Assembly: GCF_001194135.2 (NCBI RefSeq)
Contig: NC_069002.1
Span: forward strand, 7,953,828 to 8,017,827
Source: Octopus bimaculoides
Lineage: Eukaryota
DNA length: 64,000 nucleotides
Direction: 5' to 3'
The position numbers and the translations under genes are program-made. The notes beneath the pieces were generated by a model. That model made no database searches. It was not told the origin of the DNA and was given only the letters and a program-made list of their open reading frames with translations. The number at the start of each line of letters is the position of its first letter. The stretch's first letter is position 1. Positions 45,110-45,311 of this stretch are shown in pieces.

Positions 45110-45311
45110 ATTCATCGCAGCAAACACCATCGGCAACACATCGTCCTTGTCCGTCGGTTCCACACGGCACCCCTTTCACAGAACATGCTGTCGTACTCTC
45201 GTTTTCCTCATTGCATTCCTTTGCGAGCGTGCCTATGATGCAACCGTCTTTGTGGCAGCATATGTTGGATCCAACACACTGGCCTTCACCATTTGGTCCG
45301 CAAGACATACA
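45110..45311 (-). CDS. CT/OP: Neurophysin-coding internal exon (exon 2) of the octopus oxytocin/vasopressin-family precursor (cephalotocin/octopressin)
   Basis: Minus strand reads ttttttcccccctttttaattactag|TGT ATG TCT TGC GGA ... TGC TGC GAT GAA T|gtaagt. Translation is CMSCGPNGEGQCVGSNICCHKDGCIIGTLAKECNEENESTTACSVKGVPCGTDGQGRCVADGVCCDE: 67 codons + 1 nt, 12 Cys in neurophysin spacing (CxxCGP, ICC, CxEEN, CxxxGVCC). Canonical AG acceptor at 45312-45313 and GTAAGT donor at 45109-45104. Confidence 0.97.

Follow-up and report, generated by a model that had tools for sequence, protein, structure and literature searches.

A shared neurophysin exon in Octopus bimaculoides and the probable origin of cephalotocin and octopressin from one gene with alternative first and last exons

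The stretch of Octopus bimaculoides DNA considered here (contig NC_069002.1, positions 7,953,828 to 8,017,827; 64,000 nucleotides, hereafter the window) covers one vasopressin/oxytocin-type gene over 39 kb at its 3' end, the gene lying on the minus strand. It includes exon 2 (45110..45311, minus strand), a segment of 202 nt that encodes the central neurophysin domain and is present in the mRNAs of cephalotocin and octopressin, the octopus counterparts of oxytocin and vasopressin. Read from 45311 to 45110, with slashes marking the splice sites, the exon is ag/TGT ATG TCT TGC GGA CCA ... TGC TGC GAT GAA T/gtaagt. Its length corresponds to 67 codons plus one base, its peptide is CMSCGPNGEGQCVGSNICCHKDGCIIGTLAKECNEENESTTACSVKGVPCGTDGQGRCVADGVCCDE, and it carries 12 of the 14 cysteines of the neurophysin, the other two (C-x5-C) being supplied by either of two last exons, 3a and 3b. 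The sequence before the exon start reads ttttaattactag/TGT ATG, and the 3' splice site of intron 1 (gatttctgtttttttccccccttttaattactag/; 45312..45345, minus strand) is a phase-0 acceptor directly before CMSCGP, exactly where an earlier note made from this sequence had placed it. The 5' splice site of intron 2 (gtaagt; 45104..45109, minus strand) is canonical and in phase 1. The gene thereby follows a plan of three coding exons, with a phase-0 intron 1 ahead of neurophysin residue 10 and a phase-1 intron 2 following residue 76, and the acceptor boundary of intron 1 is the same in O. vulgaris and in a Sepia-like genomic contig.

The match of exon 2 to neurophysin is far beyond chance. Its peptide scores 65 bits against the Pfam family Hormone_5 (neurophysin; E=1.1e-17, cut-off 27.2 bits) and aligns at ~5e-11 with residues 10-75 of the solved bovine neurophysins in the PDB, the very segment that vertebrate exon B encodes. 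The peptide is 100% identical to annotated Octopus precursors, and the four nucleotide substitutions that separate exon 2 of O. bimaculoides from that of O. vulgaris are all synonymous; in an exhaustive HMMER search with exon 2, the best match was a Sepia-type sepiatocin precursor at 70% identity. A neurophysin-bearing precursor outside the vasopressin family (of the NG-peptide type, or the divergent paralogue of nemerteans) was considered and excluded by the exact match to the octopressin and cephalotocin precursors. Relaxed tblastn found exon 2 once in the window, so that the earlier report of no second neurophysin in the 64 kb holds. A scan of the window against Rfam returned no match.

For the 3' end of the gene, terminal exons were sought on the minus strand downstream of exon 2 as a phase-1 acceptor followed by an open frame with C-x(4-9)-C. 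The scan gave two candidates, both on the gene's strand. Exon 3a (coding part and stop 36523..36626, minus strand; S-ACSSNVRCNTSGGRSKTLKDLLLILNKMYRDKN and stop) lies 8.5 kb from exon 2, starts ...ctctttcttttcgtag/CT GCC TGC... and is translated as SACSSNVRCNTSGGRSKTLKDLLLILNKMYRDKN followed by a stop (SACSSNVRC...MYRDKN). It is used by the RefSeq isoforms X1 and X3, by O. vulgaris CAI9739012.1 and by a transcript assembled in Logan, whose alignment to 36626..36332 includes the 3' untranslated region (UTR; 36332..36522, minus strand) with AATAAA motifs at 36443-36407. Exon 3b (coding part and stop 25108..25208, minus strand; S-SCFTTDRCDRENHRSIAMQKLLEMRDGIYYKK and stop) lies 20 kb from exon 2, starts ...tatttgctttgcag/CC TCC TGT... 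and is translated as SSCFTTDRCDRENHRSIAMQKLLEMRDGIYYKK followed by a stop (SSCFTTDRC...IYYKK), with AATAAA at 25008-25003; it is the last exon of RefSeq X2 and X4 and of both published O. vulgaris cDNA proteins. Each of the two exons thus begins at a phase-1 acceptor of the polypyrimidine-AG type, encodes a C-x5-C pair, closes its reading frame with a stop and has AATAAA downstream. Both tails retain the cysteine pair required for the last two disulfides, both exons are conserved in O. vulgaris and O. sinensis, and both are in use: 3b in the cDNA proteins, 3a in the Logan transcript and CAI9739012.1. The claim of a single set of exon 2 and exon 3 in the window therefore stands for exon 2 and fails for the last exon, since the exon 3 recognized earlier, 20 kb off, is 3b, and the nearer 3a had been overlooked.

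The tail of 3a shows the canonical molluscan motif xACSxNxxC...(E/D)LLxL..., common to Sepia, squid, gastropod-like and other matches, whereas that of 3b is of a divergent type (…DGIYYK[KQ]) also found in Argonauta. To judge by this distribution of the tail motifs, 3a is probably the ancestral last exon and 3b a duplicate that dates back to the split of Octopus and Argonauta or earlier. We also considered that 3b might be part of another gene in tandem, with its exons 1 and 2 falling within the N-gaps of the window. That reading was rejected on two grounds: 3b is joined to this exon 2 in both published cDNAs, and the gapless loci of O. vulgaris and O. sinensis described below are empty between 3a and 3b.

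Two types of first exon are assigned to the O. bimaculoides gene, one encoding CYFRNCPIG (cephalotocin) and one encoding CFWTSCPIG (octopressin). In either type a signal peptide is followed directly by CxxxxCPxG and GKR, as in P0119/P0124 (CYFRNCPIGGKR) and P0120/P0126 (CFWTSCPIGGKR), of which the C-terminal 100 or 101 residues are encoded in the window. RefSeq represents all four combinations with the last exons as isoforms of one gene: the CYFRNCPIG exon with exon 2 and 3a (X1, XP_014771381.1, 153 aa) or 3b (X2, XP_014771389.1, 152 aa), and the CFWTSCPIG exon with exon 2 and 3a (X3, XP_014771397.1, 146 aa) or 3b (X4, XP_014771402.1, 145 aa). The window encodes the C-terminal 100 or 101 residues of X1-X4 exactly; the translations of exons 2+3a and 2+3b reproduce the isoform C-termini even at V in 3a and at I and M in 3b, the residues by which O. 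bimaculoides differs from O. vulgaris and O. sinensis.

The isoforms are matched by cloned products. The O. vulgaris precursors of cephalotocin (Q76DN0, BAC82436.1) and octopressin (Q76DN1, BAC82435.1) are cDNA-derived and both carry the 3b tail. Their signal peptides, nonapeptides and linkers differ throughout, and from CMSCGP to the stop they are identical at 100 of 100 residues. The earlier note had stated this identity and had argued that the point of divergence coincides with the acceptor of exon 2; alignment of BAC82436.1 with BAC82435.1 bears out both statements. A third product of the same 2003 work, the cDNA "cephalotocin-del" (Q76DM9, BAC82437.1), consists of the cephalotocin first exon followed by PPVLQPIDVTERIIAVWQCRNYWKYVMEFITRNK, and PPVLQPIDVTERIIAVWQCRNYWKYVMEFITRNK is exon 3b read in frame 0, the outcome expected when a phase-0 donor is joined to a phase-1 acceptor. 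This tail matches O. sinensis DNA at 33 of 34 residues, O. vulgaris DNA at 32 of 34, and the window up to a species-specific stop. Cephalotocin-del is a precise skip of the 202-nt exon 2, and as such is direct cDNA evidence of a cephalotocin mRNA made by splicing around that exon. For octopressin, a Logan contig from another Octopus species (SRR16213284, 961 nt) joins the octopressin first exon to exon 2 and to exon 3a with its 3' UTR, and the 341-nt 5' UTR on its first exon is colinear with the genome. Each first exon is therefore found joined to the same second exon in mRNA, for cephalotocin at the protein level and for octopressin by the Logan contig. Taken together, the cDNAs and the Logan contig support all four junctions (cephalotocin exon 1 to 2, octopressin exon 1 to 2, 2 to 3a and 2 to 3b) outside RefSeq, so that only the combination of the cephalotocin first exon with 3a is known from models alone.

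Upstream of exon 2 the window contains the 3' part of intron 1 (45312..64000, minus strand) and ends before either hormone-encoding first exon is reached. No hormone first exon was found in the 64 kb when CxxxxCPxG was sought in six frames on either strand, nor by tblastn with both exon-1 peptides, and upstream of exon 2 within the window no open reading frame combined a signal peptide, G[KR][KR] and a phase-0 GT. The O. vulgaris locus (OX597835.1; gapless, 115 kb) provides the missing part for octopressin. There, octopressin exon 1 (10001-10135) lies on the same strand as exon 2 and ends ...CCA AGA CAG/gtaagt in phase 0, the donor that had been predicted for the end of a first exon. Exon 2 (68044-68245) follows 58 kb downstream, exon 3a starts at 81467 and exon 3b at 105009, the annotated gene ending at the 3b stop. 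Octopressin exon 1, exon 2, 3a and 3b each occur once in these 115 kb, and the stretch from 3a to 3b contains nothing that resembles a further exon 1 or exon 2. Colinearity of the window with this locus puts window coordinate 64000 at position 27.7 kb there, from which octopressin exon 1 of O. bimaculoides is expected roughly 8-18 kb past coordinate 64000.

The cephalotocin first exon appears to lie much farther away. The RefSeq gene range of the cephalotocin isoform in O. bimaculoides spans 110,605 bp on one contig of 37.7 Mb, and gene ranges in the resource used are bounded by the first ATG and the final stop, as seen at the O. vulgaris and O. sinensis loci. This range, being based on coding sequence, puts the cephalotocin ATG ~90 kb upstream of exon 2 and distal to octopressin exon 1, and so at about window-equivalent 135.7 kb, a modelled position that derives from the gene range and not from DNA that was read. 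The octopressin isoform has no separate gene record, as expected of a shorter product from the same gene.

Parts of the arrangement recur in other octopods. The O. sinensis locus (CM016880.1; gapless, 59 kb) contains one exon 2, followed by 3a at a distance of 14 kb and by 3b at 39 kb; we take O. sinensis to be the current name of the Japanese "O. vulgaris" population in which the cDNAs were cloned. In Argonauta hians, a product of cephalotocin-type first exon, exon 2 and 3b-like last exon is annotated with a gene range of 126.6 kb. Two O. sinensis models (XP_029649633.1 and XP_029649634.1; gene 10001-49326) start at the codon-2 Met of exon 2 and are devoid of signal peptide and hormone; either the models are incomplete or the transcripts start internally. 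Compared with O. vulgaris, O. bimaculoides has an interval of roughly half the length, with 18.7 compared to 40.3 kb upstream of exon 2 and 20.1 compared to 37.0 kb between exon 2 and 3b. In the window, 11 N-gaps adjoin microsatellites, and unassembled repeat may explain part of the difference.

Based on this collective evidence, the locus is understood as one gene in which a shared exon 2 is combined with either of two first exons and either of two last exons to yield both hormones, an interpretation that we consider very probably correct. In the proposed mechanism, each first exon would provide its own signal peptide, nonapeptide, GKR site for processing and amidation, and the first 9-12 residues of neurophysin. 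The distal first exon would specify cephalotocin and the proximal one octopressin, and either would be spliced to the single exon 2 (45311..45110). A transcript from the distal promoter would lose the proximal first exon within intron 1, because first exons have no acceptor. Exon 2 would then be joined to 3a or 3b, each adding its own C-terminal tail with the last pair of cysteines: splicing to 3a would go together with polyadenylation there, and otherwise 3a would be skipped and 3b used. Given the shared downstream exons, the hormone made by a neuron would be set by the choice of first exon, and hence of promoter, rather than by a choice between two genes. We infer separate promoters for the two first exons because the octopressin 5' UTR is colinear with the genome and the cephalotocin and octopressin mRNAs are reported to differ in their brain distribution (PMC7181382). 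Both mature peptides have been isolated from O. vulgaris (summarised in PMC7181382). The choices of first and last exon may be coupled. The earlier suggestion of a duplicated exon 1 spliced onto shared neurophysin exons, instead of two complete genes, is thus supported by the cDNAs, the RefSeq isoforms, the gapless loci and cephalotocin-del. Its corollary of one carrier protein for two ligands needs qualification: the central neurophysin domain is physically identical for both ligands, but the two last exons give the neurophysin two different tails.

Several observations weigh against the one-gene interpretation. The weakest link is the cephalotocin first exon, whose modelled place derives from the RefSeq gene range. 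In O. vulgaris, the 10 kb before octopressin exon 1 do not contain it, which agrees with a distal position ~90 kb upstream of exon 2, and the annotation of that species is devoid of any cephalotocin product. The RefSeq isoforms are computational, and no independent cDNA support was found for the combination of cephalotocin first exon and 3a. The identity of the cephalotocin and octopressin cDNAs is one of protein sequences. Exon 2 is single in the three loci covered, the 64-kb window and the gapless 115 kb and 59 kb. Lastly, Kanda et al. 2003 (BBRC 309:743), as cited in a 2020 review (PMC7181382), reported both genes to be single coding exons.

Three other explanations were weighed on this basis. 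The cephalotocin and octopressin genes could be two complete tandem genes, with gene conversion maintaining the identity of their neurophysin exons, or else recent duplicates collapsed in assembly. There is precedent in the vertebrate vasopressin and oxytocin genes, which keep their exon 2 95-98% identical, attributed to gene conversion or purifying selection (PMC2656470), and the 11 N-gaps of the O. bimaculoides window, along with a cephalotocin first exon that was not seen in DNA, leave room for the idea. Conversion would however have to maintain identity across exon 2 and a last exon 20-39 kb off and yet end exactly at the boundary of exon 1, and each shared exon is present once in either of the two gapless loci (115 kb and 59 kb). 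In RefSeq, a single gene links both first exons to this exon 2; exon 2 has accumulated 4 synonymous changes between species, yet within species cephalotocin and octopressin differ by no amino acid in this part; and no further Octopus neurophysin gene turned up in protein searches. We consider two tandem genes very improbable. Even less probable, in our judgement, are functional cephalotocin and octopressin genes located elsewhere as intronless copies, for example processed retrocopies, to which the present locus would be merely the parent or an addition. The single coding exons reported in 2003 speak for such copies, but cephalotocin-del, from the same laboratory, is an exact skip of exon 2 and as such requires the splicing of an intron-containing gene. 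The proteins BAC84977.1 and BAC84978.1, which presumably represent the genomic clones of that report, are identical to the cDNA products; carry-over of cDNA or RNA would yield a genomic PCR product with such identity. In O. sinensis, introns border exon 2 on both sides and the last exons follow at 14 and 39 kb, and among the annotated Octopus assemblies searched there is no intronless gene model with these products on record. An uninterrupted coding region is not what this locus offers, as introns of 8-58 kb split the coding sequence in three Octopus species.

The least probable of the three explanations, as we see it, is that the join of the cephalotocin exon to exon 2 represents an artefact of annotation (a cross-species protein alignment chained over ~90 kb) or else trans-splicing, the locus being simply the octopressin gene. 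It would account for the unusually distant cephalotocin first exon (gene range 110.6 kb) and for O. vulgaris and O. sinensis annotations that are devoid of the cephalotocin isoform. It is contradicted by cloned cDNAs, hence not only by models, that fuse cephalotocin exon 1 to exactly exon 2 and 3b, and by the independent annotation of Argonauta, in which the same cephalotocin, exon 2 and 3b product extends over 126.6 kb; besides, no closer exon 2 was available to the aligner.

The one-gene reading departs from the published view. Reviews describe two duplicated single-exon genes (PMC7181382, PMC6062618, PMC10067623), which PMC7181382 puts as "two genes by clade-specific duplication". Introns at the canonical positions and shared exons in three Octopus species contradict both the single-exon structure and the reading as two genes. 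In the full text that could be searched, which excludes the subscription literature, no paper was found that attributes cephalotocin and octopressin to alternative first exons or to a neurophysin gene in common; other papers speak of "duplicated vasopressin orthologs" or "two different precursors", and one lists the RefSeq isoforms without comment. The one-gene architecture is already implicit in the RefSeq annotation, and the value of the present analysis is its recognition and a correction of the literature, not new sequence. If there is one gene with alternative first exons, the evolutionary event was the duplication of an exon and not of a gene, the hormone identity of a cell type becomes a question of promoter choice and splicing, and one central neurophysin domain serves two ligands whose sequences differ at 4 of 9 positions, with Cys1 and an aromatic residue 2 retained in both. 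There is also a practical consequence, for probes, quantitative PCR primers and single-cell read counts that target exon 2 or exon 3 cannot separate the two hormones.

Other features of the window are described for completeness. Intron 1 contains a non-coding block of 668 bp (46439-47105), located 1.1-1.8 kb before exon 2, that is 93% identical to both O. vulgaris and O. sinensis, the surrounding intron being mostly ~72-87% identical. The block is without a meaningful open reading frame and might be regulatory, or else a non-coding exon that has escaped annotation. An imperfect (TAG)n array of ~218 copies (1054-1705) is the cause of the strong GC/AT skew and the long low-complexity open reading frames in the first 2 kb. 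Two repeat families resembling short interspersed nuclear elements are dispersed over the window, one at 63089-63508, 507-682, 6708-6898 and 18239-18412, the other at 28235-28395, 54022-54194, 22953-23107 and 60586-60731, and each has at least 10 copies in the 115-kb O. vulgaris locus.

Comparison with other molluscs places the locus in a wider context. The Octopus gene has its precursor plan and the tail motif of 3a in common with the conopressin gene of Lymnaea and Aplysia and with the sepiatocin precursor of Sepia officinalis (AHH31546.1), whereas the gastropod conopressin gene encodes one peptide per gene, and the octopod 3b tail (also of Argonauta) has no counterpart among the decapodiform sequences examined. 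The Sepia-like genomic contig has the same 202-nt exon, cag/TGT ATG GCT...ACA T/gtaagc, from which it follows that the intron positions are not specific to octopods. Two Sepia precursors with an entirely conserved neurophysin were reportedly described by Henry and colleagues in 2013. In Todarodes pacificus, "oegopressin 1" (CFFRNCPPG, cephalotocin-type) has a neurophysin with a 3a-type tail (PMC10172372 supplement), closely resembling those on the CFWT-type peptides of other decapodiforms. "Oegopressin 2" (CYFRNCPAG) has a clearly different neurophysin with a truncated tail (PMC10172372 supplement) and may, judged from this divergence, represent a separate gene, so that squids might hold an extra vasopressin/oxytocin-type gene besides the shared-neurophysin locus. 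The extension of shared exons to all coleoids is plausible but unproven. In its full form, it would have the coleoid pair arise by duplication of the first exon alone before octopods and decapodiforms split, all coleoids use promoter choice at one locus, and octopods later add the second last exon, giving 2 x 2 precursors. We hold this scenario tentatively and put its chances slightly below even. If it were true, the parallel with the two vertebrate genes, which is often cited, would be wrong at the gene level, and neurophysin could carry no hormone-specific sorting information in coleoids.

Among the closest known systems is the vertebrate AVP/OXT family, which likewise has three coding exons, the first comprising signal peptide, nonapeptide, GKR and the start of neurophysin, the second neurophysin residues 10-76 (67 codons in Octopus) and being near-identical between the precursors of both hormones. 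Vertebrate exon B is also 202 nt long. Intron phases 0 and 1 are conserved across chordates (PMC2656470). The difference is that vertebrates have two complete genes whose exon 2 is similar by conversion or selection, whereas Octopus, on the one-gene reading, shares exon 2 and the last exons and duplicates exon 1 alone; it has, in addition, two alternative last exons. Regarding the use of several first exons with constant downstream exons, there are analogies to UGT1A and the clustered protocadherins, in which each first exon presumably has its own promoter and internal first exons are removed as intron; unlike these, the Octopus locus would have two first exons only, each encoding a secretory signal and a complete bioactive peptide. 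CALCA (calcitonin/CGRP) and the FMRFamide gene of Lymnaea are likewise single genes from which exon choice gives distinct bioactive peptides in different cells. In these, the first exon with its signal peptide is common and the downstream part varies, whereas in Octopus it is the first exon, with the hormone, that would alternate, the carrier staying constant.
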